Of a DNA stretch of 64,000 nucleotides, positions 8,767 to 48,825 are shown piece by piece. Under the pieces are notes generated by a model. The model saw only the letters and a program-made list of their open reading frames with translations. It had not been told where the DNA came from and did not search any database. Source of the DNA: Mytilus trossulus (taxonomy: Eukaryota). The stretch is taken from the NCBI RefSeq assembly GCF_036588685.1, contig NC_086384.1, forward strand, positions 8,680,001 through 8,744,000. The letters run 5' to 3'. The position numbers and the translations under genes were made by a program. Position 1 is the stretch's first letter. Every line of letters begins with the position of its first letter.

Positions 8767-8865
8767 ATGGCAAAAAGATACCAGATAACATTGTTTATGT
8801 TGACAATAGTGATGACAATCCGTTGTTGTTCGATGTCCATATCTGCAGAGGACTTACTCGATTAT
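8767..8865 (+). CDS. Exon 1: signal peptide MAKRYQITLFMLTIVMTIRCCSMSISAEDLLDY
   Basis: ACCATGG Kozak context, basic n-region plus hydrophobic h-region, donor TAT|gtaagt (phase 0); upstream acceptor ctacag at 8727 implies a 5' UTR intron. Confidence 0.7.
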
Positions 8866-11800: not shown

Positions 11801-14800
11801 TATCATTAAAACGGAAATTTATGTATCACCAACAAATATTTTTTTCTTCAAGAAAATAAAATTGAGAATGGAAATGGGGAATGTGTCAAAGAGACAACAA
11901 CCCTACCAAATAAAAAAAACAACAGCAGAAGGTCACCAACAGGTCTTCAATGTAGCGAGAAATTTCCGCACCCGGAGGCGTAAAAACCTGTGGGGTTAAT
12001 TTATGAACGGTTTTCGTCGATTTCATGTGCTTTTTATACAAATATTCACCTATTTAGAAAAAATTCAATCAGTAATATTTCTGAAGATAAACGAGATAAA
12101 TGTACTATGTTTACGATTTTCAGATATAATTCAACAAGCACAACTGATATGTAAAATTTTACCAACCTATTTGACATAGCCTATTTATACGGGGCGCCGA
12201 ATGGAACTCTTGTGGTTTTGTACTCAACATTCAATTTTGTACGGACAAAAGTGACTTTTGTTCAACAAAAATTAGTTCAGTTTAACAAAATTTGTATCAT
12301 ACTACAAATTTAAATTTTGTCATACAAAATTATCTATCAGCGGACAAAAGTCACTTTTGTCATGACAAAATTCATTTTTGTTACACAGACTTGACTTTTG
12401 TTACCTAATTTGAAAATTGGGCGACAAAAGTCAATTTTGTATTGAAATTAGTTTAGTTTGGTTTCTGTGAACTCCTTTGCATACAAAATCGACTTTTGTT
12501 ACACAAAATTGACTTTTGTTACACAAAATTGACTTTTGTTACATAAAATTGACTTTTGTTACACAAAATTGACTTTTGTTACACAAAATTGACTTTTGTT
12601 ACACAAAATTGACAAAATTGACAAAATTGACTTTTGACTCAACAAAATTGACAAAATTGACAAAATTGACTTTTGTGAGACAAAATTGACCAATGTGAGA
12701 CAAAATTGACTTTAGTCTCAACAAAATTGACAAAATTGACTTTTGGCTCAACAAAATTGACAAAATTGACTTTTGTCTCAACAAAATTGACAAAATTGAA
12801 TTTTGTCTCAACAAAATTGATTTTTGTCTCACGAAAGTCAATTTTGTCTCACCAAAGTCAATTTTGTCGTCACAAAAATGAATTTTGTGGTCACAAAATT
12901 GACTTTTGTCTCAACAAAATTGACAAAATTGACTTTTGTCTCAACAAAATTGACAAAATTGACTTTTTTCTCAACAAAATTAACAAAATTGACTTTTGTC
13001 TCAACAAAATTGACAAAATTGATTTTTGTCTCAACAAAATTGACTAAATTGATTTTTGTCTCAACAAAATTGACAAAATTGACTTTTGTCTCGACAAAAT
13101 TAACAAAATTGATTTTTGTCTCAACAAAATTGACAAAATTGACTTTTGTCTCAACAAAATTAACAAAATTGACTTTTGTCTCAACAAAATTGACAAAATT
13201 GACTTTTGTCTCACAAAAGTCAATTTTGTCTCACAAAAGTCAATTTTGTCTCATAAAAGTTAATTTTGTCTCACAAAAGTTAATTTTGTCTCACAAAAGT
13301 CAATTTTGTCTGACAAAACTGAATCTTACCTCACACAATTGACTTTTGTGATTTAATTTCCAAATCAGGTAACAAAAGTCAATTTTGTATGCAAATATGT
13401 TTATATTTGCATACCTTTTAGACAAAATTGACTTTTGTCATGACAAATATGAATTTTGTCTAAAAAAATTAATTTTGCCATGACAAAAATGAATTTTGTC
13501 TACACAAATAAATTTTGTCATCACAAAATTGAAGTTCTCACAAAACAAGTCTGCAGCACATAGTTTTGTAAGACAAAAATGATTTTGTTATGACAGAATT
13601 GAATTTTGTACAAAACCACAAGAGTCCCATTCGGCGCCCCGTAATTTACTGTTCTATGACATAAATTTATCTATTTTAATCTATTTTATTATTTATACAC
13701 AATATACAATTGAGTACATATGGTATTATTACAATTGAGGCAATAGAAAGCGAGAAACTGAATGACGTAGATAAAGGCAATGAAAACTCACCATACGGCC
13801 TTTACCAATGAGCTAAGCCAAATTACAGTAATGTTGGTGTTAAAAAAGTAAACAATTCAAACGAGACTTTCGAATATTTAGTTTATTTTAAATTTAAAAC
13901 AAATATGAACTATCGAAGGCAAAAGAAAAGTACCCGTTTCTTGCTCTGGACGGAAACAAAGGATATTATGATGAGTTTAAACATGTTTTTTGAGTGCTCA
14001 ACCCTTTCCTTAACCATGGACAGCACAATATAAACAAGTTAATTCAGTTGTAATCTGATCTGCACGAAAATAACACGTAACACAATACCTTATGGACTCT
14101 CCAACATAAGTTTTGCATGATAATTTCGCCCCTGATAAATAAAGAAACTATTAAAAAAAATCTGGTGTCAACTACCTCAAGCAAAGTTTACTTGGATAAA
14201 ATGGTGTTTTTGTTAGTAAGATACAAATACATACTATTGTCTCGAAGTTTTACATTGCTTTCCTAATATTTATATAGTGATGATTTGTAAAATAATGAAC
14301 AAAATATTTAATAATTCACATAATTTTCTGATTGAAGGAAGAGAAATTAGAGGAAATGAAATCAGGGTTTACGGAGCAAACAATTGAGGAGGAAGAAATT
14401 GAGTTAGAGGATGTAGAGTATCGAGAGAAAATAGCAGAAAAGAGAGGACAAGATCCGGATAAAATATGGAAATCAGAGAAACTTAAAAAGTTCATAGTAG
14501 GTGTTAAACAAGCATTAAAACTGAACTAACGGCCTTATTTATGTAAAAAAATGAACGAAAAACAAATATGTAACACATAAACAAACGACAACCACTGAAT
14601 TTACAGGCTCCTGACTTGGGACAGACACACACATAAATAATGTGGCGGGGTTAAACATGTTAGCGGGATCCCAACCCTCCCCTAACCTGGGACAGTGGTA
14701 TAACAGTACAACTTAAGAACGAACTATACAAATTAGTTGAAAAAGGCCTAACTCATCAGATGGAAATAATATAGTTCTTTTTATGGGCGTATAAAACTTA

Positions 14801-17800
14801 CAAATTATGCAGGCTACGTGTGACCAAAAAGCTTCTCTCTTTTTTTATTGCACTTCGCTTGGACCTAGAAAGTTACAAGTTCTCATAACTTTGCACTTTG
14901 GAATAGTTTATTCTATAAAGTCCAAAATATTAAAGGATTAATTCTAGACAAGTTCAAAAAGACATTATATCGATATAAACATGTAACGCTCAGAAGAATG
15001 GACATGCCTGTACAAAAATAAAACATCAATTATACAGCAAAAACACAGTCTAACCAAACATATAAATTAACTAAGAAAAACACGAAAATTATCAGAGTTG
15101 AAATCAATAATATAATATGAGGATTACCAAGACTGTTTTTTTAGGAAAAATATCCAAATGTGCATGCGTCCGGTAAGAAAAATAAAGAAGACGAAAAGAA
15201 AAATAAAGAAAATGAGAAGAAGAAGAAACGAAAAGAGAAAAAGAAAATTAAAATAAATGAAAAGATTGATAAGGAAGGTGAAAAGAATAACAAGGGAGAT
15301 AAAATAAATAATGAAGGACAAGTTATACATATTGAAGGAGATGAAATTAATATAGAACGAAATAAAATGAATAAAGAAGAACATAAAATGAATAATGAAG
15401 AACATGAAATGAATAATGAAGAACATGAAATGAATAATGAAGAACATGAAATGAGTAATGAAGAACATGAAATGAATAATAAACAAGGAGAAGACAATAA
15501 TCATATGGGAGGTGCGAAGAAAAGGCGAAAACGATTGGCTATTGCAAATGTGGAACGTTACTGGCCAAAGGCAATCATACCTTATGTGTGGACTCAATAC
15601 TACGAGGGTATGTATGAACGGACTGTTATACAGGTGTGGTCACGGTTCTATAACATTAAATAATTAGATAGTGTTTTTTTATAATATATTTTTGATTATA
15701 TGTGTGTGCATTGTCATTCACACTAATGTTTCTTCATTAGATAATTACATGTAGTTTATTCGACACATTTAATGACATCACACCTATGATTTTTATGATA
15801 ATATATGACAATAAGGAGAGTTTGTGTAACAACTCATAACCATGTCCAAAGGACATGTATGGTGACAACAATATATCACCGTACGATCATGGCCATTGAC
15901 CAAACTCATACCGTACAGTAAGGTATAAAAGACCCCTACATGAAAAAAAAAATCAATGACCTAATTTTTTCAAAATTTTAAATGACAAATAAATATGGCA
16001 GAGAGTTAACAACGAAATTTCTTAAATATAGCAACTTTGAATAGAAATATTTGTAAGTGTATTTTCCTCTCATGCATTAACTTTACTCATACAAAAGAAA
16101 AGAAAAAGAAACAGGTCTACATCATTTAAATTATGTTTACTCTGAATGGAAACACATTGTGTAAGCATGTAATTCTTTACTTCTGATTAAAATACAAATA
16201 TTGCAGATTGCTTTTGTTACTAAATCTTCAGATTCTATAATTATTACTTCTTAAAACTAATTTTATAACCTCTAGGAGATAATGCAATCAGAAAAAGAGG
16301 CGTTTACAGAGCTTTCCGTCATATTGAATACTGGACTTGTGTACGTTTTGTTGAGTGGACAAACAGTACCCGTGCTGACTATGGACTGAACCATGACAGT
16401 AGATTAAAGTTTATAAGAACAGGAGGGTTTGTAATAATTGACATTGTTTTTTTCTTTCGTTTCTTTGTCACTGTATTTCATTTTATTTGTGGTCTCTGAT
16501 TTGATTTTCAAAAGTAAGGATATGTGATATGATTGATAATGAGACAACTATTCAACAGAGATAAAACGAGATGTTTCTAGACAATTAAAGTTCACGAAGC
16601 AGCCATCAACAATGAACAAACCTCATACCGTACAGTCAGCCAAAAAAGTCAGTACACATCCAACATCTAATGTATTTAGTGTAAAGACGTCATAAGCACT
16701 GAGAGGAAAACATTCAGCAATGCCAAGATACAGATATCGACATATTATAGATCCATGAAATGTGTATATGTATATTAATATTAGTTTGCTTTTGATGTAA
16801 TATGCCAATTAAAATATTTAATAGGTGCAATAGCCTAATCGGAAGATCACCAGTTGCTCTAAATGGTCAGAAAATCAACTGCTGTGACGATGTGAGTTTT
16901 AGTTATTGTTTATATGTCGATTGACACTCAATGTACTGTAATACTAGTAAATATACAATATTTAAAATTTTTTATCAATATCAAATTCGTATAAATCTGA
17001 AGCATCAATATAATCTCGGGAGCTCTGCCTGAGAAAACATATTAATAAGGGCTTGATGCAGTATGTGATATTAAAAAACGAGTTAGTATGGTATGTGACA
17101 TGATAAACAAAACAATATTAATATATATGTATATAGATATAGATTCTACCACTGCATCGAGTGTAATACGATATTTATCCACTCGAGACAGTTAGATTTT
17201 AAAATTGAAAACGCGAGGCTTGCCCGAGCGTTTTTAATATACAAAATTTAACTGTCGAGAGTGGATACATATCGTATGACATGAGGTTTGGTGGTGGAAT
17301 CTGTTTCTCTAATGATTTTCTAACATAATGCAGGCAAATTTATTCCTTTCGAATGATCTGCAAAAAGATGTGCTCTTATGTGACGTCATCAGACATGGTC
17401 GTCTTTATTCATGCCGTCACAATAGGAAATTCAGAGGAAAGCAAAAAAAAAATCGACGTCATAATCGGATTTAAACCAATGAAATACTGATATCAAAATA
17501 ACCACACGTTGAATTTTTTTATATATTGGGTGCTGAAAGGGATAAATTTACGAAGAATTAGAGAAACTTTATTATGCATCTTACGTGTAACTTGATGTAA
17601 CTGTCTTTTAAAATACACATTTGAAATGATTATCTATAGACGTTATACAAATATACACATATGTGTAGCCCTTTTATGATGTCGATATGATAAGAGAAAC
17701 ATATTGACTAAGGAAAAAGTTTGAGGTCGATATGTCTTATATAATATCGTCTTGACCGCAACCAAAGGCTACAAATGTTATATTATTTATAAACAACTTT

Positions 17801-20800
17801 TGCATGAACATTGGGGGATTTTTAGAATGTAGTTTTAAAATCTGCGTATACCCTATACAAAATGCTGTTTTAGACCAACGAAAAGCTTTTCAAAGAAATA
17901 ATATGCCGTGCAAACTAAGTAAATACAGATGTACATGCGATCAAGTTTTAAGGAATCACACATCCTTGAAAATATATGATTTACTTTTAATCAATTATGG
18001 ATATTTGACGTGGTCAATACGTCATACATTGACCGATAACGAATGGTTATAATTAAATAGTTGTTCTTATTAATTACTGATACTATTTATAACTGAAAAA
18101 TTGTATTAAAAGAGTGGCGAAATATACCAGAAGGACATTCAAACTCATAAGTCTAAAATAAACCGACAACGTATAACCACTACTTAACAAAACATAAATA
18201 CAAATAGACAAACAAAAGTAAATAATGTCTGATTCAATGGATGTTTTAATCATAGTATAATTCTATTTCTATTTAAAAACTGATATTCATCATCTTACCG
18301 TCTCATTAATTATCAAATAATAATATTTTAATTGACACATTGTATTTATTTTTCAGAGAACATGTGTTCATGAATTAGGTCATTCAATTGGACTATTCCA
18401 TGAACAAAGAAGTCCCTTTGGCAGAGATTATGTACGGGTTTCTTACGACAATATTAATACTGAAGGTTTGGACTTTCTTTCTAATGATTTGATTTGATTT
18501 TTTATGTGTTAACACCACTTTTAAGCACCGCATTAAGGCTATTTCATGGCGGCCAGTTTTTTTTTATTGGCGGAGGAAGCCGGAGTGCCCCGAGAAAACC
18601 GCCGATCTTTAATATAGCAAAGTTGACAATCCTAGTCAATTAAGTTTGGAGTCGAGGTAAACACCCATGAGAGGAGTTTGAACTCACACCCACAGTGTTG
18701 ACTGGTTAGTGATTACAGTAGAAACTACTTAGGCTACTCGGCCAACGAGGTCCCCTATTTTTTTTTATTTTTTTTTTAAATGCTATGTATCAATAACGGC
18801 GACAGTAATACACCGCTGTTCGAAAGTCATGAATCGATTAAGAGAAAACGAAACCGGGTTATAAACCAAAACCGGAGGAAACTTATCAACTATTAGAGGA
18901 AAACAACAGAAAAATTTAAGTCCCATCAAAACACCAAACAACAATGTAACAAAAACAAAAACGAACTATAAGACTAAATTTCTAATCATATATTAGACGT
19001 AAATTAATCTGGTTAGGTTTAAATCTGCAACAATAACACACACATACACTCACATTTATATTTTACTTTTCAACCTTTTCTTTGTTTAACAAATTATTGT
19101 TTTGGTCAATTACGTATTCAACGGATAATCATTTATATTTTGTTGAATATTTTCTATTGCTTGACAAGTCTCAATCTTATCTTTTGCATAATGAAAAAAC
19201 CTTAGTCAAGATTGCTTAGAAGTTTTTCCAGTGGTGATTTTTGTAAAAAACTATTTAAGCGTAAAAGCCACACGACAATTTGACAAAAATATAACTTCTG
19301 ATTTGTATATTTTCCTTATCTCCATTAAATCATATACACAACACTCGCACTATGTTAATTCTATTCGATATTCAAGCATAATTTTTTTATAATGTTCTCT
19401 ATATACCAAGTCATGAATATGACAGTTGTTATCAAATAGTCATTTTCTATGTATGCTAGAGTTTGTTTTTTGTTGCACCTACATGTTTCTGATGTTCCGT
19501 TGTTTTTCTATTAAATTGTTGATTTGTTTCCCTCGGTGTTAGTTTGTATCCCAGAGTTGTTTTATGACTTATGAACAGCGGTATACAACTGTTGCCTTTA
19601 TTTATTATAAAAAAAACAATTGTGTGTTCTTGTGAGCAACAGTAGAATGTTTGCCATAATAAACAATAATAATATGGGGTTTGCGAATATCTATTGTGGA
19701 CACAAATAAACAAATTGTTGACGTTTCGTCCCCGAGGATATCACCAGCCCAGTCGTCAGCACTTTGTTGTTGACACGAATATCAATAATGTGGTCATTTA
19801 GATTTTTTTTCGAAAAACTAAGGATTTTCTTATTTCAGGAATAGATAAAACCTAAGCCGTATTTGCACAACTTTTTGGAATTTAAGATCCTCAATGCTCT
19901 TCAATTTTGTACTTTATAACTATTTTGATATGAGCGTCACTGATGACTCTTATGTAAACGAAACGCGCGTCTGGCGTACTGAATTATAATCCTGGTATCT
20001 TTGATAACTTTCTGAAGAATTGCCAAATGATCATGCAGAAATGTCTTAACTGTAGTACGCTTTACACAAGTATATTTAAGTGTATAACATAAGCCTGTCT
20101 TATGTATATATATTGTTTTATCAGATTTATTTCGTTAATTTTAATATCAATTATATGGTCATTTTTATAAATTTTCTGTTTACAAAACTTTGATTTTTCA
20201 ACAACTAAGGGTTTTCTTACGCCCAGGAGTAGATTACCTTAGCCGTATTTGGCACAACTTTTTGGAATTTTGGGTCTTCAATGCTCTTCAACTTTGTATT
20301 TGTTTGGCTTTTTAACTTTTTTGATCTGAGCGTCACTGATGAGTCTTATGTGGACGAAACGCGCGTCTGGCGTATTAAATTATAATCCTGGTACCTTTGA
20401 TAACTGTTTACACCACCGGGTCGATGCCACTGCTGGTGGACGTTTCGTCCCCGAGGGTATCACCAGCCCAGTAGTCAGCACTTCGGTGTTGACATGAATA
20501 TCAATTATATGGTCATTTTTATAAATTTTCTGTTTACAAAACTTTGATTTTTCAAAAACTAAGGGTTTTCTTACGCCCAGGAGTAGATTACCTTAGCCGT
20601 ATTTGGCACAACTTTTTGGAATTTTGGGTCTTCAATGCTCTTCAACTTTGTATTTGTTTGGCTTTTTAACTTTTTTGATCTGAGCGTCACTGATGAGTCT
20701 TATGTGGACGAAACGCGCGTCTGGCGTATTAAATTATAATCCTGGTACCTTTGATAACTGTTTTCATTAATATCAGGATAAATGCACTTACATAATTTTT

Positions 20801-38800: not shown

Positions 38801-41800
38801 TTGAGTTTACTAGAACATCAACTTTCATAAAATTTTATGCAAAAAGATAGCATAAACTAAAAAAAAAAAACATTGAAGAAAAGCTTTCTTATAGTTACCA
38901 GTAGCACAAAATGATAGAAAGATAAGACAAATACATGTATCAATAACTTTGTGCGATACATTATGTACATAGTGAATTTCCTCCCGCTTTATACAACGAA
39001 CGAGTCAGATGCAATTTTGGCCTTCTTTAAAACAATTATCCTAGTGGTAAGACCAATCTTCATAAAGACTTTTGTCATAATTAAATTATTTGAAGGATGT
39101 TTTTAAGATCTTAAACTATATACTCATTTGGCATAATAACTGTGCAGTTGCTAAGATCCATACATATTTTGTTCATTTTCATTCATAAACCATGTTTAAT
39201 CCTTAACACACACAGTAGCATAAGCTACACAATATTAAAGCGACTCTGGCATTTTTCCATTTTACAATATTTGCATTGTCTTTCCCACATTTACATCACA
39301 GGGGTTAAGGCTTTCAAAATCTTTTCTTTTTGTTTCAACTTGTAGGAGCTGTAGGTAAGTGTATCTTTTGCAAAATGAAAATATTTAAAAACAATTTGAA
39401 CTTGAAACTCGTGAGTGTACGAGATAATGAGTTTGCAGTCATTGCCTGAAATGGTTCGTTTTGTCTGGCTTTTTGTTTTTCTATGAAATGCCACAAAGAG
39501 TCACACATTTACACATTTTACAATTATTTCTGCAAATATGCGAATGTTATCAATTAATAATATAAGCGAATCAGATAAAAAGTTTATTAACAAAAACAAA
39601 ATGTAAATCGAGATTTTGATATCTTTAATTTAGCATTCAAAGATGTTCTCAAAGGTGTAGATATAAACGTTTGATAACACGATTTCAATTCTGCCTAGTA
39701 TACTATCTAAAAGGAAATATGACAGTTTGTGACATTGCGAGTATGAATATTAATAATAAAACAGTACGAAACAAACTAAGACAATCATACAATATCTTCT
39801 TATCTTTATGATATACAATCTTTGGCAACACCACTAAAGTAATGAAAATACAATAGTTTTTCCATTGATAAATTGATAAACCCGAAAAACAGTGAACCCA
39901 CAATTTTATTTTTGTATTTTGTAGAATGCCCGCCAGGCTGGATAACTTTTTCTGAAAGATGTTACAAATGGTTCGATGTTTATATGACAGTGTATGAAGG
40001 GAGAGAATTATGTGCCAACATGAGCGCCTCTATGTCGTCTGCTAAGGATCCAAAGGAAAACGATTTTTTGTTGACGTTAAGGTAAATTTCATCAAGCAAC
40101 TGAATGATTAAAATGAGTTGCTAAGAATTTGTTTTTTAAGCTAACCTGCTCAGCAAAGCCCATATCAGTTACAAATAGTTTTGATTAAAACTACTGTTTT
40201 ATTGTGAAAATTAGGCCCCAAAACTCTCAACCAATAAGATATGACAGGGCAACATTTTATACAATTTAAATGTCAATATATTAGTAAAATGTTCTTAGTT
40301 GCACACATGTTAGATACTAGTATTTTATTTTTAATCTCGTTAAAACTTAAGTGATAGTATGCAGTGTTAATTTTTTAAAAGTCTTTTGTTAATGTTGGTT
40401 CAATTGGTCATTTACAATACAGGGAAGAATCTTAGTGCCGTTGTTGTAAAATTAAAGAGCATTGTTAACAACTATAAAGTAAAAAAAGTATCAGAAGTTG
40501 GGAAAACAGTTAATGGTGGTTTAAATCTGAACTCAGTGCATGAACATTATTTGATGTAGTACAACGCAACTTTCTCCAGAAATTGTCTCTCGCAAACTAT
40601 GATATATACCATATGGTATTAAACTATTCATAAATGTGAATCATTCATCATACTTTTTTTTTTATAAATTGTTATTTGGATGGAGAGTTGTCACATTGGC
40701 ACTCACACCACATCTTCCTATATCTATCATAGTTTTACCAAAGACGATGGACTTGGTGCACCTGTAGCTGAATTAATCTTTACTAGGAACACGTACAAAA
40801 TAAAAGACAAACTTAAAAAGTTACTAAATACATTTTGGAGCTAATTTATCACATTATCACATGTAATTGGATACGAAACATCTAATGTTTATTTTCCATG
40901 AGAAAGCTTGAACATTTACGTTAGGCGTATTTTGAACAACTTCCATTATGTTCGCTAATTCATGCTCTTAAAGTTCGATTTCTTTAATTTGACTTTGTAA
41001 TTGTTGATATGAGCTGATGGGTTTTACAAAGACGAAATGCATATATGCTTAATTGTAAGTCGGGTATATTTTATGAGATATTTTTTAAGAAAACATCATT
41101 GTCTGATGTTTTACGTAAATTCCCGTAGCTGTATATACTGCAATCGACCCTTGTTCAATTTAAGCTACTTTTGGATTCTTACATGTCGTTACAACGGCCC
41201 ATTGAGACGAAGACACGTCCATTTTATAAGTTACAATTGTATAAGATGCTTTAATAAATAATGTTGATATTGAAAGAAAATTTTGGCAAATCATTTTATG
41301 TTCGTTTAGAAAACAATGAAAATGAGAAGAACCATCAACACAAAAAAAAATTAGAATATCATTATTCTAAACTAACTACTTATCTGAGATGTAAATGTAG
41401 GACAATCCATATGCATTTCTTTGACTATTTGCAAGACAACTAGTAAGAAGACAGATTAAATTATTTATTTAGGTTTTTTGGGTACTATTTTGAATATAAA
41501 TATTTCCCATTTATTTTCTTTAACAGCGACAACAGTCGTTCCTTCTGGCTTGGTATAGAAAAAGATGAAAATGATGAGTATATATGGAAAGAAGATGGTT
41601 CAATTGTTACGTGGACAAATTGGGGACGAGGTAAAATTCATTATTACATGTCAGTTGTGTTTATGCTTTAATATGATGTGGAATTCTTTCGTAATTATTT
41701 CTTTGCAACATATTACATGTCGAACTAGATTTAATGCATATTATATTCCGTTCATTTGTATATTCTCGTATTAAAATATAAACTGCTTAGCAGTAAAACG

Positions 41801-44800
41801 AACAGTTATTGAAATATTTTCCAGATTGAACGAAAAAACCTTCGATTAATTTGTTTTCGTCTGCTAGATAAATAGATAAACATAGTGTAGAATCAAAATC
41901 TTACGAAAGCCTATTAGGGTCGCACACAAAAAAATAAATTATCTCGTAAATACAAGATATGTATATCGTAATTACAAGAAAACTATCTTCTTGTAATTTG
42001 ATTATCTTGTAATTACGAGATCAAAAAAATCTGATCTCGTAATTACGCGATAGTTTGGTCTTAATTACGCGATGATTATTTCTTAATTACGAGATTAAAA
42101 TCTTAACTCGTAATTACGAGATAGTTTTCCCGTAATTACGCGACAATCATCTCGTAATTACGCGATAGTTGTCTCGTTATTTATTACGAGATATATTTAT
42201 CTCGTAATTACGAGATCAATAAAAAAAATTGTGACAATAATAGGCTTTTGTAAAATCTAAGTATAATTAGGCCGCAAAATAAGCAAATGATACATACAGT
42301 TTTAGGCAAGAGTATGTTTTTAACAAAAATGATTTTTGTTGGTAAATTATCAAAGTTTTAACCTTTTGTTTTGTAGGAAATGATACATCAAATGCATGTG
42401 CAAATGTAAACGATGAGGGAAAGTGGAATCGTTGGGGTTGTGATTGGGATTATTTATCTATTATCTGTAAATTAACTCCATCTAGTAAGTAATGTACTTG
42501 TTCGTTTCAATTTTGAGAGAGACTGTAAGCTAAGTCCAATAAAAAAAGGGACGAAAGATACCAGATGGACATTCATCTCATCGATCGATAATAAAACTGT
42601 CAAAGCTATTTCTAAAAAGGAAAGAGATAAGCAATCAATCACAAATATACAAGACACAACATATTGAACTAAAAACTAAGCAACACGAATTCAACCAAAA
42701 CTGGAAATGATAAAAGGTACTTCTGAGAGTACGCAGATTATCTTCAACATGTGGCATCCGTTCGCGTTGTTCACGGTAAAAGGGTTCCTTTGTTAGGGCA
42801 CATTGACTTCAAAAACTAAACATAGTACACAAATCCATCCATAACGTCATGTAGATGCTTACAAGTTATTGTTTATTTGAACAATCCTTTTTTTAGATTT
42901 AAAATGTTTGTCTTGCATATTTCATTAAGGGCTTCAAAATGTACGTGTTTAATATCATAAAAACTGCAAAACTCATCTCTTCGATGTTGAGATATTAACC
43001 AACAGCACTACTCCAAAGTATTTATTGTGCTATCTAACTTGTACAAAATTTTAATATATATAACTCATTCAGCAATAGATTGGATTGTCTCACTTTGTCA
43101 ACAATTTGAGATCTAATCTAAATTATTAGTAATTAAGGTTTTCATCAGTCATTACAAAGTATGACAATGTTTAGTATATTGGAAATTCAATAGTCTTTTA
43201 ATCATATTCAATTTCTCAAAAAGTGAATGACAAGAAGCCGAATTATGTGATATTTTGCAACTTTTAAATATGTTGATTGTCTGTAATACATGATGCATTC
43301 ATTCCAGAGAAAAGCGCGTTTGGCTAGTTTGCTTATTGATTTTATTTTGAAGGTTCCTATCACTAACGCAATTTGATGAGAATGTAAACACAGTAAGAGG
43401 TTTAGCGCTATAAAACCAGGTTTGATCCACCATTTTCTACATTTGAAAATGCCTGAACCAAGTCAGGAATTAATATGACAGTTCTTGTCCATTTGTTTTT
43501 TATGTGTTTTTTTATTTGATTTTGCCATGTGATTATGGACTTTCCGATTAGATTTTCCTCTGAGTTCAGTATTTTTGTTATTTTACTTTTTACTAAAAAA
43601 TGATAGCCTCAAATAGTTAACCTAACCTAATTTAAGTTGTATTTGTATCATGTAGTACATAAAATCTCAGGATATAGCGAGATGCAACTTGTAACATTAA
43701 CACACCAATATTTTTTTAGCTGAGAAAGTGATTTCGGATTTTTTTTTAATCATATAAACATCCATAAGTCCATTGAAGGATAAAGCAAGCACTATTCCAA
43801 ATATGTCTTTTATGTGAAATAAATGGATCTCAAACAAAACCTCTAGTTTTACCTTAACAAAAAAAGAGGGGGAAAATCAATCATCAAAACCAAAATTAAT
43901 ATATATTTGATACAAACAAAATGTAATATGTACAAATCATGAAAAACAAATTCTCAGGCTGCAAGAACTGATATAAAAGAGCCAATACACATATATGATA
44001 AATAGAAGTAAATCTTACAACATGGTCTTTAACGAAGCACTTGGGACATGCAATCACGAATATTCCCACCAATTGTGTTTATACATCCTTACATATAACC
44101 GTACATATATGTTCTTTGATGTGAAATGCACAATGTAAATTACCTTTTCTCGTGGATTCAATCTAGTGCCAATGTTGTAAATTTTCTAGGAACAAACCCG
44201 AGAGTTTAAAACATTGCACTGTTATTAAAATAGTATTTACAATATGTAAAATGAAGATAATTTGCGCATGTACATAAAATGAAACCAATCATGTTTCATG
44301 TATTGTCACTGATTGGGACGACAAAGAAAAGCATAATCAGAACGCTTTTTGTTTGCCTAACATTGGCCACGTTTTTCATGAATTGCAAAAGACTTAACAG
44401 ACGATCTGACATGTACCAATGGTGCTGCAATAACTTTAGTTCGAATCCCCTTCACGAAACGGTAAACACACAATTATAATAATGAAATATAGTTTAAAAC
44501 AAAATCAATTGATAAAATGTATCATTTCTTTCTGCTGATGTTGTCGTTTTGTTTTTATTTCTTATCATATTACATATCTTCCTATTTCGTCATTGCGTAG
44601 GTTAATTAATGACTTTCAAACTTTTTTTAAATCTTGACTTTTTACATAAAATTTCAGTTTCAAATATATATAAATAGACAGATTGATAGAATTTTAATAA
44701 ATGTCAGATGTTAACAGTCCTTTTATTAGCTTGCCTAGACTAGCAAGTCGTCACCCTTTTATTGCAAAAAAAACAACAAAACTCGTATTAAGTACAGCAC

Positions 44801-47800
44801 TAAATTTTATATTAACAATTTTACAACACAATTGTGATGTTTTCTTTCTGATTTATTCTGACAATATTGGTTCATAGAGGTAAAGTGAATTTAACTCTAA
44901 ATGAATAGTAGAAGCAGGAACACGTACGTCAGACACTAACACATAAAAGATATCAATATATTAGAAAATATTTGTTGCTTATGGAATTTAACGAGGCCGA
45001 GCATCAGTTGTTGTCATTTAAGAACAAAAAAGAAAACAAATATCCGTCATATACATGTGCATCAGACAAAAATAAGTTTTGATGATACTAGATATTTTAG
45101 AAATTACAGGGACAGTAAAAAAGGACGAGAGAAAACTTTAAAAGTGGTTGTGTTTTCTTTCCAACATTTTTTTAAAGTGTCTAAATAGTAAGCTAAAACA
45201 TCTTTGGTGTTTTATTGAATTGCAAGTCAATCATTCAACCCATTTGATGACCTATTGAACCATAAACAAACTTACGAATAGTCTTTTCAAAGATGCAAGG
45301 CAAGAATTGGTTTGGTTTCACACGAACATAGAGTATTTATTGTTGCCTTTAATTGCGTTTAATTTTTTTTTATCTATTTGGGTAAAGACCTTTTGATAAT
45401 GGTCCGATTTTAATGAAACTCGACATTTTTAACCAGAACTTGGATGTTATCTTCCTTTATTGAATACGTTTTCTCTTCAAGCTTCCCTCTAGAAAGCGTG
45501 AAAGCAATATTTAAAAAAATTAAATTATAAAAAACACAAAATTTTGACTTTATTGTCAAAGTGTGATGTTTGAAGACCAACAATTATTTGTTGAACAATT
45601 GTTTTCTATCAATCTCTATGAATTATTGTAGTATTTTTAAACGCTTTTAATTCTTAGATAAAAAGAAAATATCCACCGTTTAATCAAGTTGTCTCATTGG
45701 CAACCAAACTCAGAATCAATATTGATACACATATGTGCCATCTTTAATGGCCTGACAACAGTATCGTAACTACATTCCTTCTAAATAAGTTTGTTTAAAG
45801 GTTTGATTAGCCTTTAAAGTGAATGCTTACATTTTTGTGTCCCTGTAGAATTCCCCCCCCCCCTCTTTTGTGTTTTGTAAAGAATATTACCATGCCAGTT
45901 TTATATAATAACTTTTCGAAGAATCCAAATGTAGAAATTATAATTAACGAGTAATTGAAGAGCACATTAATTCATAATGAGTGAATTCGCAGGAGTTAGT
46001 AATACATTTAACTTGGTAACATTTTAATGTTTAAATGGTATGTGTGTAGTTATAAACGTTTGTATAGATGACGTACCCATATTGCTTATAATCAATACTT
46101 TCTGTTCTAGATCGTGTTGAATGTCTCGACTACAGACTTGATTGCTTAGATCTGTTAAAAGACGATCCTGGGATGTGTATAGATTTTGAAGAGTTTTCTA
46201 GGGACAATTGTCCATGGACATGTGGCTTCTGTGGAACTGGTAAGATGATTATGAATGATATTCGAAATTAAACTACAAAACTGTAAATCGTTGGAGCCCA
46301 AAATAGATATCATTTTTATATGCATAAAGGATTTCTTTATTAAGTTTTTAAAAAATCAGTAAATCTTGCGCAGTTCCTTTTCAGTAATCAATTTTAAGCG
46401 CTTTGTTTAGAGTTATCGTATTTTCAATATATACTATCATTTTGTCGTTTATCATCTTGCAACATTCAGGAATGTGAAGTGATCAAGTAAAAGAACTGTT
46501 TGGTTTTGGTATTCTCCCCCTCTCTCTCTCTCTCTCTCTCTCTCTCAGAGTTATTACAGGTGATATAGATAGATTAAGAAAATAAATTGTCTTGTTCACT
46601 AAACGAATTGCAAACTTGATGTGGTCTTCGGATTATGTTTTTCCTATATTCGGCAGTAAAACTCTTGCTCAACTGATGTGTTAAGGGGTGTTTATTCAGT
46701 TGTACATGTGCGGGATGTATAATATATAGTCACATCCAGTTTGGTTTTCTATGCGCTTAAGGACCCTGTTGACAAGTTTTCAATGGATTTTCCCCAAGAC
46801 ACTCTCCTTTTCTAATTGCTTTCCACGCAATTGACAAAGGACGTAAATGTAGATAATTTAGCAATATAAAATTGCTTTTATACCTATTAAATGTTTATAT
46901 TTTAGCAACCATTTGTGCAATTCCAACACTGCAACCAAAAACCATTATTAAAGCAGGAAGTGCTTTACGAACTCGTGTGGGAGGAATATTTTCATATATT
47001 TGTGCTGACGGCTATGAGCTAGATAGTGGTAATGATAAAAGAGCTTGTCTCAGAGATGGAAGTTTAACGGGCGATCCACCAGTATGCATAGGTAATTCAT
47101 GTATCTGCCTTTCCTACCAACTGGAAAGATCGCTCATATCAAAAACCAAATATGTAGGCATTTGACAACAATAAACATATAATAAAGGGAGCATGTTCAT
47201 GACTTCAAAGATTTGACATTAGTATAATCAATTGCTGAAATTTTATTTACGTTTATTTAGATCTGTCAATTATCTGGAACACTCACATTTTACTGTTATG
47301 CCAATCAAATGTTTTGCATTTGCAAATCATATTTTTATGCCCACCTACGATAGTAGAGGGGCATTATGTTTTCTGGTATGTGGGTTCGTTCCTCCGTCTG
47401 TTCGTTCGTCCCGCTACAGGTTAAAGTTTTTGGTTTAGGTAGTTTTTAATGAAGTTAAAATCCAATCAACTTGAAACTTAGTACACATGTTCCCCATGAT
47501 ATGATCTTTCTAATTTCAATTCCAAATTAAAGTTTTGACCCCCAATTTCACGGTCCATTGAACATGGAAAATGATAGTGTGAGTGGGGCATCCGTGTACT
47601 ATGGACACATTCTTGTTTTCAAATATTTTTTTCAAATTTTATTTGTGACATGCTGTCCCGCATTTGCCTTTATTTGTCTTATTAAGATCTGTTCAAAGAA
47701 TAAAAGTTAATTATTTATTAATAACTTTGTTTTTGAAATATGGATTTATTGGATATCTGTTTCAAAAGGATGCATTAAAAATATATATATAGCCCTGCAA

Positions 47801-48825
47801 TAGGAGAATGTATGTGTTTAGAATGGTTTTGTGTTTGTTACTTTTTCATTGACATGTTACATCATCTTTACTTCATATCTTAATTATTTTTCAGAGAGCC
47901 ACTTAGTGCAATCAAGAAACAATGATGTGTCTCTTCGCTCACGACGCATGCTCGCCAATGAAAGAAAAATGTATATAGGAAACAACACATTAATGCGTAT
48001 TCATAAATCCGGGAGAGTTGTTGCCTGGACTTTCTATTCAATGGTTGACTGTGAGGTTACCTTCAGTATTTGGAGACCTGTAGATAAAGGACGGTGTGTA
48101 TAGTTAATGATATACTTCTTTAATGTCAGAGTAACGTATCGTGTTATATTGCATGGCATAATATGGGTAATATCACTTAGCGCTCAAGAAAAAAACATAC
48201 CAAAAGAATACTGCTTTTTCGTAGAAACGGTGAGGTCACTTTCTTGGAGAAAACCTTACGGTCTTATTATCACATCAGAATGACTACGGGAAACCATTAT
48301 AAGATATGAACGTAATTAACTGCTAGATATCTATCCCTTAACATTAGGTTTATATGTAAACTAAAAAAAAAGTTATCCAGGAAATTCCGAACTGCAAGTT
48401 AAATTCAATAATTGAAAAGACCATATAGTCTGACACTATCAACGCGTGAATATTTCTAACAATTTGGTATTATCAATTTATTATATTAATCCTTCCAATA
48501 TTCCTTCCTCAGGTTTACTCTAATTGGACGGAATACAATCGACAAAAGTCGACACGATAGGAAGCGAAAAGTTTACATTCCTTTTGCTGAACAAATAAGT
48601 GCACTTAAAGGTGATATAATGGGTGTATTTTTTGCCTACGGAAAAGGATCTTGCATTCCATACGATCTTTGTAATCTTAATATGGACAAATACGGGAATC
48701 AGATGGAATCAATGAACATGAAAGGAAAGGCTGTGGTCTGGAATATAAAAGAGACTTATCAGTTCAAAACTCTAACAGACAGTTCGCGGTGTAAAATTTG
48801 GTCATTCTCAGCTGTTGTTCAATAA
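8767..48825 (+). CDS. Multi-exon (30 coding exons, ~1617 aa) secreted astacin (M12A) metalloprotease with EGF, 2x ApeC, CUB, kringle, 2x ShKT, 2x Sushi, C-type lectin and an unassigned C-terminal domain
   Basis: Manually chained GT-AG exons with matching phases, total 4854 nt (divisible by 3), ending SAVVQ-TAA at 48825; diagnostic motifs of each domain are listed per exon. Exons 1-3 are less certain. Confidence 0.88.
11133..11231 (+). CDS. Exon 2: propeptide NKGDKEDMYRPIAVVIGKMSHSYENFKKMSEMR
   Basis: Pyrimidine tract + tcag acceptor, open 99 nt, donor gtatgt, phase 0-0. Confidence 0.55.
12190..13641. mobile_element. Foldback/MITE-like element with internal ACAAAATTG/ACTTTTGT satellite
   Basis: ~33-bp TIRs CGGGGCGCCGAATGG(A/G)ACTCTTGTGGTTTTGTAC, TA on both flanks; 20-30 bp tandem units in both orientations. 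Confidence 0.9.
14338..14496 (+). CDS. Exon 3: acidic propeptide EEKLEEMKSGFTEQTIEEEEIELEDVEYREKIAEKRGQDPDKIWKSEKLKKFI
   Basis: Within ORF 14332..14529; aag acceptor, donor ATA|gtaggt, phase 0-0 fits the flanking exons; protein-like composition. Confidence 0.55.
15145..15607 (+). CDS. Exon 4: K/E/N-rich propeptide with MNNEEHE repeats, furin site RRKR and start of mature astacin (LAIANVERYWPKAIIPYVW)
   Basis: ttttttag acceptor; RRKR at 15523-15534 followed by the astacin N-terminal W-P-x-x-x-I-P-Y; donor G|gtatgt. Confidence 0.85.
15367..15480 (+). repeat. Coding 21-bp minisatellite (MNNEEHE)x~5.4
   Basis: ATGAATAATGAAGAACATGAA tandem units inside exon 4. Confidence 0.95.
16276..16426 (+). 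CDS. Exon 5: astacin domain (AFRHIEYWTCVRFVEW...LKFIRTGG)
   Basis: TCVRF motif; ctag acceptor, gtttgt donor, phase 1-2. Confidence 0.92.
16825..16891 (+). CDS. Exon 6: astacin domain (GCNSLIGRSPVALNGQKINCCDD)
   Basis: GCxSxIGR...GQ motif; phase 2-0; gtgagt donor. Confidence 0.92.
17139..17567. repeat. Dispersed element with a long internal imperfect palindrome; reverse copy at 1-198
   Basis: gatatttatccactcgagacagtta...taactgtcgagagtggatacatatc hairpin; 1-198 is its reverse complement. Confidence 0.75.
18357..18465 (+). CDS. Exon 7: astacin zinc-binding site RTCVHELGHSIGLFHEQRSPFGRDYVRVSYDNI
   Basis: HExxHxxGxxHE metzincin/astacin signature at 18369-18404; phase 0-1. Confidence 0.96.
18487..18755 (-). 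mobile_element. tRNA-derived SINE
   Basis: Revcomp shows A-box TGGCCGAGTAG, B-box GAGTTCAAAC, conserved GGTTTTCTCGGGGCACTCCGGCTTCCTCC central domain and (AAATC)n tail. Confidence 0.8.
20330..20373 (+). ncRNA. Type I hammerhead ribozyme
   Basis: GCGUCA-CUGAUGA-GUCU(UAUGU)GGAC-GAAA-CGCGC-GUC^UGGCGU. Confidence 0.9.
20684..20727 (+). ncRNA. Type I hammerhead ribozyme
   Basis: Identical to the 20330 copy. Confidence 0.9.
21346..21440 (+). CDS. Exon 8: astacin Met-turn (NFNK...YDLSSLMHYGAF)
   Basis: YDxxSxMHY motif; phase 1-0; gtaagt donor. Confidence 0.96.
22156..22282 (+). CDS. Exon 9: astacin C-terminal part (...FEVINDINNCK)
   Basis: Open frame ending in an INxxxxC equivalent; phase 0-1. 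Confidence 0.8.
23063..23194 (+). CDS. Exon 10: EGF-like domain (CGDFPLQCDNWGYQTVIRDRCQCRCIEGLDPHSGC)
   Basis: 6 Cys with CxNxG...CxCxC..G pattern typical of the post-astacin EGF; phase 1-1. Confidence 0.88.
23864..24130 (+). CDS. Exon 11: ApeC domain 1, part a
   Basis: WPSEGFSLLKPKTGCPIGF...FC...WGPGKYCI...CPSG, the apextrin C-terminal pattern; phase 1-1. Confidence 0.92.
24656..24859 (+). CDS. Exon 12: ApeC domain 1, part b
   Basis: PDGEYD...FCCRSD...LPNKEPFILF...CQAVHG; phase 1-1. Confidence 0.93.
24895..25417 (+). mobile_element. Degenerate retrozyme array (~1.5 units), intron 12
   Basis: Same unit; cores mutated (CUGAUGU/CAAA at 24984-25027; CUGAUAA/GGAA near 25346). Confidence 0.8.
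25975..26405 (+). repeat. Dispersed repeat family C (AAAATCACAAAAATACT...GGAAAGTCCATAATCACATGG)
   Basis: Copies at 29172-29450, 35620-36020 (reverse) and 43395-43590 (reverse). Confidence 0.85.
27035..27284 (-). repeat. Family A copy (reverse)
   Basis: Reverse complement of the start of the 7596 copy. Confidence 0.88.
27825..27965 (+). CDS. Exon 13: ApeC domain 1, part c
   Basis: GM...GGYHP...FFYCYY terminal ApeC motif; phase 1-1. Confidence 0.92.
28321..28596 (+). CDS. Exon 14: ApeC domain 2, part a
   Basis: WPVESFSMLKSQDGCPEGF...FCSK...WQKGSYCI...CPTG; phase 1-1. Confidence 0.92.
28774..29147 (-). mobile_element. Retrozyme monomer (354-bp period) in reverse orientation, intron 14
   Basis: Intact hammerhead on the - strand at 28811-28854; terminal redundancy taaatagttatcaaaggtac at 28774 and 29128. 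Confidence 0.88.
28811..28854 (-). ncRNA. Type I hammerhead ribozyme
   Basis: Reverse complement reads GCGUCA-CUGAUGA-GUCU(CAUGU)AGAC-GAAA-CGCGC-GUC-UGGCGU. Confidence 0.88.
29733..29942 (+). CDS. Exon 15: ApeC domain 2, part b
   Basis: GFEDGYIKFDD...LPNGDF...FCCRDDG...LPTHDSFVLF...CQKV (not the frame shown in the ORF track); phase 1-1. Confidence 0.93.
   Translation, partial: DLKTDTSSLMTYNHPKSLKTSIYLMEILVQMLKSIFVVGMTVLGQILLHFRHMILLFCFVIANSLARRL
30264..30495 (+). repeat. Dispersed repeat family D (AAAGAGGGACGAAAGATACC...)
   Basis: Copies at 32270-32800 (reverse, two), 42545-42770, 53010-53360 (reverse) and 61477-61680. Confidence 0.8.
30600..30727 (+). repeat. Decayed retrozyme fragment (similar relics near 3830-3980, 60700-60745, 63360-63465)
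   Basis: gacgaaacgcgtgtctggcgta...ggtacctttt retained, CUGAUGA lost. Confidence 0.6.
31459..31599 (+). CDS. Exon 16: ApeC domain 2, part c
   Basis: MIDKEEYLTI...GFVP...VHFCHY; 141 nt, same length as exon 13; phase 1-1. Confidence 0.9.
32919..33028 (+). CDS. Exon 17: CUB domain a (CGG...TPNFPGPY...CNFIFK)
   Basis: CUB consensus CGG / (S,T)PNFP-xx-Y / C; phase 1-0. Confidence 0.93.
33369..33490 (+). CDS. Exon 18: CUB domain b (GPEDSKLIMNFHTFNVE...C)
   Basis: LxFxxFxVE...C CUB pattern; phase 0-2. Confidence 0.9.
34422..34546 (+). CDS. Exon 19: CUB domain c (YCG...VTFTS...SGFNAT)
   Basis: YCG / VxFxS / GFxA motifs; phase 2-1. Confidence 0.93.
36264..36390 (+). CDS. Exon 20: kringle domain a (CYNGNGTTYNGNVNVT...CLHW)
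   Basis: CYxGNGxxYxG...TxxxxxCxxW; phase 1-2. Confidence 0.94.
36978..37096 (+). CDS. Exon 21: kringle domain b (ENFCR...PWCYT...DYCDVC)
   Basis: NFCR and PWCYT kringle motifs; phase 2-1. Confidence 0.94.
37755..37889 (+). CDS. Exon 22: ShKT domain 1
   Basis: CYDIFDDC...FC...CRKSCKLC; phase 1-1. Confidence 0.92.
38419..38598 (+). CDS. Exon 23: Sushi/CCP domain 1
   Basis: CSSP...YAVGETVLFMC...CLADGTWSG...C; phase 1-1. Confidence 0.92.
39925..40081 (+). CDS. Exon 24: C-type lectin-like domain a
   Basis: CPPGW...CY...C...ENDFL; phase 1-2. Confidence 0.93.
41527..41630 (+). CDS. Exon 25: C-type lectin-like domain b
   Basis: FWLGI...YIWKEDGS..TWTNW; phase 2-1. Confidence 0.93.
41904..42250. 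mobile_element. MITE with internal palindromic (TCTCGTAATTACGAGA) repeats
   Basis: TIR CGAAAGCCTATTA / TAATAGGCTTTTG, TA flanks. Confidence 0.8.
42377..42484 (+). CDS. Exon 26: C-type lectin-like domain c
   Basis: CA...GKWNRWGC...IICK; phase 1-1. Confidence 0.92.
46111..46239 (+). CDS. Exon 27: ShKT domain 2
   Basis: CLDYRLDC...MC...CPWTCGFC; phase 1-1. Confidence 0.92.
46521..46546. repeat. (TC)13 microsatellite
   Basis: Direct reading. Confidence 0.95.
46906..47091 (+). CDS. Exon 28: Sushi/CCP domain 2
   Basis: CAIP...VGGIFSYICADGYEL...RACLRDGSLTGDPPVC; phase 1-1. Confidence 0.92.
47332..47619 (+). mobile_element. Helentron-associated non-autonomous element (HINE/DINE-like)
   Basis: T-run start, ATGCCC/GGGCAT subterminal inverted repeats, GTTC/GTCC-like microsatellite, 3' hairpin GTGTAC..GGACAC, T-run end. 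Confidence 0.7.
47895..48093 (+). CDS. Exon 29: RSRR site and first half of the unassigned C-terminal domain
   Basis: Open frame ...SLRSRRML...GRVVAWTFY...FSIWRPV; tcag acceptor; phase 1-2. Confidence 0.85.
48513..48825 (+). CDS. Exon 30 (terminal): C-terminal domain, FTLIGRN...EQISALKGDIMGV...WSFSAVVQ*
   Basis: Strong polypyrimidine acceptor; the phase 2 join keeps frame into ORF 48619..48825. Confidence 0.87.

Follow-up and report, generated by a model that had tools for sequence, protein, structure and literature searches.

A mollusc-wide family of modular astacin proteases, represented by an intact gene in Mytilus

Does a stretch of some 40 kb of mussel DNA, in which an astacin zinc protease is followed by a long succession of binding modules, constitute a single gene, and if so, what kind of protein does it encode? 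The question is raised by 64,000 nucleotides (nt) of Mytilus trossulus DNA (C12:8680001-8744000), the whole of which is called the window here and which belongs to an assembly of 1.30 Gb in 541 contigs; it is AT-rich (GC about 0.31) and contains no N. The window holds a real, intact Mytilus gene of about 40 kb for a large secreted zinc protease with a chain of binding modules, and its predicted product of about 1584 amino acids (aa) is encoded by one intact gene. The gene belongs to a mollusc-wide family with the same architecture and is not a new kind of protein. The function considered most likely is that of a secreted, convertase-activated astacin, which would be held by its tail on glycan or microbial ligands and on protein substrates at mucosal surfaces.

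Gene model and transcript evidence

To build the exon model, simple scores for donors and acceptors were used together with the reading frame known for every stop-free stretch. The model consists of 29 exons with GT-AG junctions on the + strand (8767-48825; 4752 nt), which together form 1584 codons without any internal stop, from an ATG at 8767 to a stop codon at 48823-48825. A phase-compatible junction was obtained for every intron, in agreement with the phase-consistent multi-exon reading frame of the original prediction, which had counted 30 exons. An extra small exon may be present inside the 5.5-kb first intron. The domain order is signal peptide, pro-segment, astacin, six-cysteine (6-Cys) module, two ApeC domains, CUB, kringle, ShK-like module, Sushi, C-type-lectin-like domain (CTLD), ShK, Sushi and a family-specific C-terminal domain. 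Almost all module boundaries are in phase 1, as is typical of extracellular modules that have been shuffled.

The exon chain is real, far beyond chance: its whole order is collinear with proteins that were predicted independently from about 20 mollusc genes. When 16 family proteins were compared with the window by tblastn, ordered matches at 35-41% identity extended from 15.5 to 48.8 kb; their ends coincide with predicted exon ends, and the homologues end at the stop codon of the window gene. Exon chain, Pfam matches and collinear homologues thus all bear out the earlier proposal of one multi-module astacin with the domain order given then.

Read evidence comes from one public run, guessed to be RNA, in which the stretch 21300-24900 was examined so as to avoid the intronic tandem repeats. 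A spliced contig of 352 nt (depth 3.2) matches the window without mismatch and in frame at 21404-21440, 22156-22282, 23063-23194 and 23864-23919, and each of the three segments that it skips has GT at its start and AG at its end. The contig links exons 7-10, which carry the Met-turn, the end of the astacin domain, the 6-Cys module and the first part of ApeC1. Astacin is therefore joined to ApeC in frame, and the fusion of the protease to ApeC is real at this locus. Three junctions are confirmed in this way; the remaining ones rest on splice sites and homologues.

The transcript evidence at the locus spans exons 7-10 only, and some database models are fragmentary, for example a 585-aa protein of M. 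coruscus that begins at the kringle. Both facts would fit a merge of at least two neighbouring genes, such as an astacin-ApeC gene and a kringle-Sushi-lectin gene. Such a merge is nevertheless extremely unlikely. All junctions are phase compatible, no internal signal-peptide exon was seen, and about 20 independent gene models from 15 species carry the whole order. Furthermore, one homologue is known from a transcriptome assembled de novo and is backed by peptides, and another, the oyster-like member P0046 (1538 aa), is encoded on an intron-free contig of 4790 nt; this length leaves no space for introns and the whole chain must therefore be on one mRNA. The exons of the window gene are as follows.

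Exon 1, 8767..8865, +: start codon, the first ATG in the open stretch, and an N-terminus resembling a signal peptide (MAKRYQITLFMLTIVMTI); donor GTAAGT in phase 0; signal peptide assigned by eye, with a weak positional match to that of the scallop homologue
Exon 2, 14338..14496, +: acidic pro-segment; weak splice scores
Exon 3, 15145..15607, +: K/E/N-rich pro-segment with EEHEMNN 7-aa repeats, furin-type KKRRKR and mature astacin N-terminus LAIANVERYWPKAIIPY
Exon 4, 16276..16426, +: astacin catalytic domain; Pfam Astacin profile positions 19-46; tblastn 40-58% identity to homologues
Exon 5, 16825..16891, +: astacin catalytic domain (GCNSLIGR...INCCDD); phase-compatible sites, consensus fit by eye
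Exon 6, 18357..18465, +: astacin zinc site HELGHSIGLFHE; Pfam Astacin 3.1e-7, 30.7 bits
Exon 7, 21346..21440, +: Met-turn SLMHY; Pfam Astacin; donor 21440 from the spliced contig, acceptor 21346 inferred from phase and homologue spacing
Exon 8, 22156..22282, +: C-terminal part of astacin; both ends confirmed by the spliced contig
Exon 9, 23063..23194, +: 6-Cys module, EGF-like by cysteine count alone; both ends from the spliced contig; 43-47% identity to homologues
Exon 10, 23864..24130, +: ApeC1 part a; acceptor from the spliced contig; Pfam ApeC 8.8e-12, profile positions 1-92
Exon 11, 24656..24859, +: ApeC1 part b; Pfam ApeC 4.6e-11, profile positions 113-169; phase 1-1
Exon 12, 27825..27965, +: ApeC1 part c (..FKFFYCYY); 141 nt, phase 1-1, best splice scores in the intron; matches oyster homologues; weak Pfam ApeC match, profile positions 168-208
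Exon 13, 28321..28596, +: ApeC2 part a; Pfam ApeC 2.4e-8; phase 1-1
Exon 14, 29733..29942, +: ApeC2 part b; Pfam ApeC 7.1e-17, 62.4 bits
Exon 15, 31459..31599, +: ApeC2 part c (..VYQVHFCHY); 141 nt, length and phases as exon 12; no Pfam match alone
Exon 16, 32919..33028, +: CUB part a; Pfam CUB 0.056, profile positions 1-33; strong splice sites
Exon 17, 33369..33490, +: CUB part b; phase-compatible sites; tblastn to oyster CUB
Exon 18, 34422..34546, +: CUB part c; phase-compatible sites; tblastn to P0045 residues 673-716
Exon 19, 36264..36390, +: first half of kringle; Pfam Kringle 1.5e-5, profile positions 1-37
Exon 20, 36978..37096, +: second half of kringle; Pfam Kringle 1.1e-6, profile positions 40-76
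Exon 21, 37755..37889, +: ShK-like six-cysteine module 1 (ShK1); 49-54% identity to homologues
Exon 22, 38419..38598, +: Sushi 1; Pfam Sushi 2.4e-5; poor acceptor score, but homologue alignments begin at 38418
Exon 23, 39925..40081, +: CTLD part a; Pfam Lectin_C 0.087 and UL45; tblastn 35-48% identity
Exon 24, 41527..41630, +: CTLD part b; Pfam Lectin_C 0.16; strong acceptor
Exon 25, 42377..42484, +: CTLD part c; strong acceptor; tblastn to P0014; motifs read directly
Exon 26, 46111..46239, +: ShK 2 (ShK2); Pfam ShK 1.2e-4, 23 bits against a cut-off of 20.9
Exon 27, 46906..47091, +: Sushi 2; Pfam Sushi 4.5e-6
Exon 28, 47895..48093, +: linker with RSRR and first third of the C-terminal domain; tblastn to all homologues
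Exon 29, 48513..48825, +: remainder of the C-terminal beta-sandwich domain and stop codon

The introns contain repeats of several kinds. In intron 1, a minisatellite (12483-13533) of 20- and 30-nt units resembling ACAAAATTGACTTTTGTCTC yields long spurious open frames (KIDKIDFCLN...). Matches to the type I hammerhead ribozyme are found on the + strand of intron 6 at 19934-19977, 20330-20373 and 20684-20727; two of these sense copies, 354 nt apart, score 33.9 bits (gathering threshold 34) and a weaker third scores 21.4 bits. An antisense type I match lies in intron 13 (28811-28854, - strand; 34.1 bits). These matches represent retrozyme-like repeats within the introns of the gene, and further repeat pieces with similar translations lie near 24.9-25.4 kb and 49.3-49.8 kb.

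A family conserved across molluscs

The original prediction did not recognise the domain order. The same architecture is, however, annotated in many molluscs, and the tandem-ApeC arrangement is the standard oyster form. Members combining Astacin, ApeC, CUB, Kringle, Sushi and Lectin_C occur in Mytilus, Saccostrea, Ostrea, Crassostrea, Mizuhopecten, Sinanodonta, Potamilus, Dreissena, Haliotis, Patella, Babylonia and Plakobranchus, and the collinear database proteins are named 'uncharacterized' or 'Metalloendopeptidase'. The informative matches to the last exon of the window gene come from Babylonia areolata (a protein of 1636 aa), Haliotis asinina (1650 aa) and Mytilus californianus and M. coruscus; all are 'uncharacterized' proteins in which the order Astacin-ApeC-CUB-Kringle-Sushi-Lectin_C-(ShK)-Sushi is followed by the shared C-terminal domain. 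Word searches seeded with one Mytilus and one Saccostrea member added proteins of M. edulis, Saccostrea echinata, S. cucullata, Ostrea edulis, Crassostrea virginica and Mizuhopecten, and also of Sinanodonta, Potamilus, Dreissena, Patella, Littorina and Plakobranchus.

In oysters, all members have two ApeC domains before the CUB domain, exactly as in the window gene. LOC111127870 of Crassostrea virginica, LOC125652111 and LOC125652118 of Ostrea edulis, and LOC133178176 and LOC133201786 of Saccostrea echinata are collinear with the window exons, including both ApeC domains, and have the same C-terminal domain and the same end residue. With 1478-1538 aa they compare with 1584 aa for the window gene, from which they differ by an identity of about 40% and by a pro-segment that cannot be aligned except at a short motif and at the cleavage site.

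A second form of the family exists within Mytilus. The 'Metalloendopeptidase' P0045 of M. edulis and LOC127738897 (P0021) of M. californianus share family, order and C-terminal domain with the window gene, but have a single ApeC and only about 40% identity to it. A pattern search finds the zinc motif in these two gene models and no MHY Met-turn, which is either a gene-model error or a degenerate Met-turn in the paralogue. The orthologue of P0045 is present in the same genome as the window gene, at C1:100435613-100470287 (+), with mostly 75-97% identity per exon (61-97% over all matches). Elsewhere in this genome, four adjacent matches to the P0045 kringle at 43-47% identity (G000:C10:24120058-24126837, - strand) indicate a multi-kringle gene.

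The tandem-ApeC form is thus common to mussels and oysters. In a tree of ApeC exon a, all tandem-type copies form one clade (87/87), within which ApeC2 of the window groups with oyster copy 2 (87/86); the tree of exon b gives no resolution. The ApeC duplication is probably older than the separation of mussels and oysters; the support for this is moderate and comes from exon a.

In the literature, a search that included LOC and accession identifiers found no paper on any bivalve member of the family, and none of the papers found to mention both astacin and ApeC describes their fusion. A survey of mollusc ApeC proteins (PMC9585378) distinguishes two 'highly complex' groups (8 and 9) whose proteins have over 10 domains, not named in the portion of its text considered here, and one of these groups is common to bivalves and gastropods. 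An astacin review (PMC9848320) gives CLEC, KRING, SUSHI, ShKT and CUB as partner domains of astacins, and ApeC is absent from the list in the part of it considered. The earlier interpretation is supported in part: no member of this family, widespread across molluscs, has been functionally characterised, but the domain order is not an unrecognised one.

Protease, activation and binding modules

The zinc motif HExxHxxGxxHE, read directly in exon 6 (HELGHSIGLFHE), is intact, as is the Met-turn SLMHY with its zinc-ligand tyrosine in exon 7, an exon that is present in the spliced contig. Among the family members the zinc motif is kept in all and MHY in most. The pro-segment is a low-complexity region, acidic and basic in character, which can be aligned between species only at a short motif and at the cleavage site. 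Its exon 2 is homologous to the pro-region of P0045 and P0021 (E 1.4e-5 in a small database; motif Y.E.RK.A.EKG.DPD), and its exon 3 contains a coding tandem repeat (15271-15484) with periods of 21, 42 and 63 nt, the 21-nt unit of which corresponds to EEHEMNN in about five copies. The motif IEGD is a tentative candidate for the aspartate switch. The pro-segment ends in exon 3 with KKRRKR, directly before the mature N-terminus LAIANVERYWPKAIIPY, and a basic site before W...IPY is conserved in homologues from mussel, oyster, abalone, Dreissena and Littorina. From the established zymogen biology of astacins, a furin-type convertase would be expected to activate the enzyme at KKRRKR. The motif RSRR before the C-terminal domain (exon 28) was considered as a further processing site and rejected, as it is not present in homologues.

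Pfam scans and searches were run on single exons or stop-free stretches of the window gene, or on database proteins. Astacin was matched on the stretches 16269-16496, 18336-18494 (30.7 bits, cut-off 22.5) and 21318-21452. ApeC (PF16977) was matched at 23797-24168, 24547-24891, 28290-28610 and 29708-29959 with 34.5-62.4 bits against a cut-off of 26.5, and weakly at 27827-27964; each ApeC copy occupies three exons, of 267, 204 and 141 nt (ApeC1) and of 276, 210 and 141 nt (ApeC2). Further matches are Kringle at 36194-36463 and 36925-37113, Sushi at 38361-38606 and 46857-47162, ShK at 46092-46268, and, weakly, CUB at 32894-33034 and Lectin_C at 39846-40082 and 41447-41668. The CUB and Lectin_C scores are weak because each of these domains is split over three exons; for the CTLD fold family, support is weak in the window gene and strong in homologues. 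Scanned exon by exon, the 6-Cys exon, ShK1, parts b and c of CUB, part c of the CTLD, part c of ApeC2 and both C-terminal exons gave no Pfam match.

Two module names of the original prediction need to be reconsidered in this light. Its 'EGF' module is exon 9, a conserved 6-Cys module without a Pfam EGF match here or in most homologues. As for its two ShKT modules, ShK2 is recognised by Pfam ShK, while ShK1, without such a match, is ShK-like only in that all six of its cysteines align with those of ShK2. Direct reading found the toxin Lys-Tyr dyad in neither ShK module of the window gene.

The C-terminal domain, of about 135-150 aa, has no Pfam model and is defined here as a feature of the family. 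A search with the last exon among 1.84 billion representative proteins gave 20 matches: three full-length or partial family members, six low-complexity or unrelated proteins and 11 short ones, of which 10 align with exon 29 and one (P0013, no Pfam match) was left out. P0002, P0006, P0012 and P0017 were rejected as relatives, being low-complexity or repeat proteins by Pfam scan, and P0019 (6688 aa) was set aside, as only a short stretch matched. The last exon corresponds to the C-termini of P0004 and P0021/P0014, to an internal repeat of P0020 and, by tblastn, also to the C-termini of P0045, P0047 and P0048. In the Haliotis protein P0020, the first part of the domain matches three times (residues ~1088-1141, 1320-1373 and 1490-1545), and the domain appears to be repeated in the abalone members P0020, P0049 and P0050.

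An AlphaFold2 model of the oyster fragment P0015, made with an alignment of family sequences, is a beta-sandwich with a predicted local distance difference test (pLDDT) of 90.2 and a predicted template modelling score (pTM) of 0.83. Foldseek found nothing below E 0.2 in the PDB for this model. A wide search with VIA-align yielded generic jelly-roll matches only. The top three, with Z values of 9.2, 8.8 and 8.2 for alignments of 115-127 residues, are a capsid protein and a tail-tip protein of phages and the Cwp84 lectin-like domain; carbohydrate-binding module (CBM), PHR and F-lectin jelly rolls follow. A protein-language look-up pointed with a low score to PF18560 Lectin_like, the Cwp84 domain, in the same direction as the structural search. 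The model suggests that the domain is a family-specific lectin- or CBM-like beta-sandwich, and it is not assigned to any named family here.

Proposed function and known systems

The product of the window gene may combine the functions of a sensor and a protease, as the original prediction proposed. The protein would be secreted as a zymogen, and a furin-type convertase would cut after KKRRKR to free the mature N-terminus LAIANVERYWPKAIIPY, which astacins need for activity. The non-catalytic tail would tether the protease to glycan or microbial ligands, for which the ApeC domains, the CTLD and the C-terminal lectin-like domain are candidate binders, and to protein substrates, which might be bound by CUB, kringle and Sushi. 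The site of action would be secreted mucus or epithelial surfaces, with a role in defence or mucus upkeep, as has been proposed for a limpet member. This member, P-vulgata_14 of Patella vulgata, has the same architecture and was detected by tandem mass spectrometry in the bulk adhesive pedal mucus of three limpets; its role as an antibacterial or defensive agent protecting the mucus is the authors' own proposal (Kang et al. 2020, PMC7333891). It probably corresponds to the gene LOC126814967 (P0062), is secreted and, as both modules of the window gene, has an ShK without the toxin Lys-Tyr dyad. It differs in its single ApeC, in its gastropod origin (P0062 has about 30% identity to the oyster form) and in having been detected as a protein, whereas the window gene is known from DNA and one spliced contig.

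Some observations weigh against a ligand-held, active mucosal protease. Neither EPN/QPD nor WND, the motifs of sugar binding, is present in the CTLD, where exons 24-25 read ...WTNWGRG|GND... and WNR, and the Z values of 8-9 for the C-terminal model are at a level that the tool warns is common for models without a true relative. RNA support for the window gene is limited to exons 7-10, in a run only guessed to be RNA, though the GT..AG joints argue for RNA. Finally, no close orthologue of the last exon (48514-48819) was found in other Mytilus proteomes, and nothing above 64% identity exists among the 1.84 billion representatives; the 64% matches are exon-sized open reading frames on unassigned contigs (P0001 cluster). 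The other Mytilus proteomes searched thus seem either to lack the tandem-ApeC gene or to leave it unannotated, and the gene may be a presence/absence gene within Mytilus. The exon model checked here describes a mussel gene of which at least the last exon is seemingly missing from the mussel proteomes in the searched collections.

The missing orthologue, in spite of four other Mytilus proteomes that contribute the paralogue, and the low depth (3.2) of the sole spliced contig could also indicate a decaying or dispensable copy that is open by chance, maybe one of the presence/absence genes common in Mytilus. This is very unlikely, as the reading frame is open over all 1584 codons, catalytic residues and cysteines keep their patterns intact, spliced RNA exists and the tandem-ApeC type is conserved in oysters.

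The main rival to the proposed role at mucosal surfaces, distinctly less probable but to be taken seriously, is a BMP1/tolloid-like processing of matrix or secretions (mucus gel, byssus or adhesive, shell matrix), in which the choice of protein substrates would fall to CUB, kringle and Sushi, with the lectin-like modules fixing the enzyme to a matrix of glycoproteins. The combination of astacin with CUB follows the substrate-recognition logic of BMP1/tolloid, and tolloid and cubilin are among the distant matches. The presence of the limpet member in adhesive mucus (PMC7333891), and the expansion of the astacin and ApeC families and their induction at larval attachment in the oyster (PMC10225672), are in line with such a role. 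However, the repeated CUB domains and calcium-binding EGF array of the BMP1/tolloid type are not found, the window gene having one CUB and no Pfam EGF match, and the only ApeC ligands tested, as far as the portions of the sources considered extend, are microbial cell-wall components. ApeC binds peptidoglycan in short ApeC proteins of amphioxus and molluscs, according to the parts of PMC8361754 and PMC9585378 considered. These short-form proteins (amphioxus ACP1/2, oyster CgACP1 and snail BgACP1; PMC9585378, same parts) share the ApeC domain with the window gene but are small and lectin-only, without an enzyme.

A digestive astacin secreted into the gut, as the crayfish archetype, with modules that bind food particles or microbes, is quite improbable. 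The archetypal astacin is indeed described as a digestive enzyme in the part of the astacin review considered (PMC9848320), and lectin-like modules could bind algal or bacterial glycans, but astacins of the digestive kind are short and consist of no more than a signal peptide, a pro-segment and the catalytic domain, and the sole detection of the family at the protein level is in pedal mucus. Rather unlikely, too, is a molluscan pattern-recognition metalloprotease in which the tandem ApeC, the CTLD and the C-terminal domain would bind peptidoglycan or glycans and thereby localise or activate the astacin, as a counterpart of MASP or factor C in mucus or haemolymph, combined with a possible presence/absence status of the tandem-ApeC gene in Mytilus. 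A mucosal, ligand-held astacin is thus the preferred reading, and a family conserved across bivalves and gastropods and detected in limpet mucus is a reasonable candidate for research on mucosal defence or bio-adhesive upkeep.

Among well-known proteases, BMP1/tolloid and the ShKT-astacins (Hydra HMP1, HMP2 and HAS7 and nematode NAS; PMC9848320, in the part considered) share with the window gene an astacin zymogen with CUB, EGF-like and ShKT modules downstream. They differ from it by the absence of ApeC and by another order and number of modules. A comparison can also be made with the serine proteases MASP and C1r, with the order CUB-EGF-CUB-Sushi-Sushi, and with factor C of the horseshoe crab, also a serine protease, which contains EGF, Sushi, LCCL and C-type lectin domains. 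Their catalytic part is not homologous to that of the window gene, and the likeness is one of logic only: recognition modules and a protease zymogen are combined in one chain.

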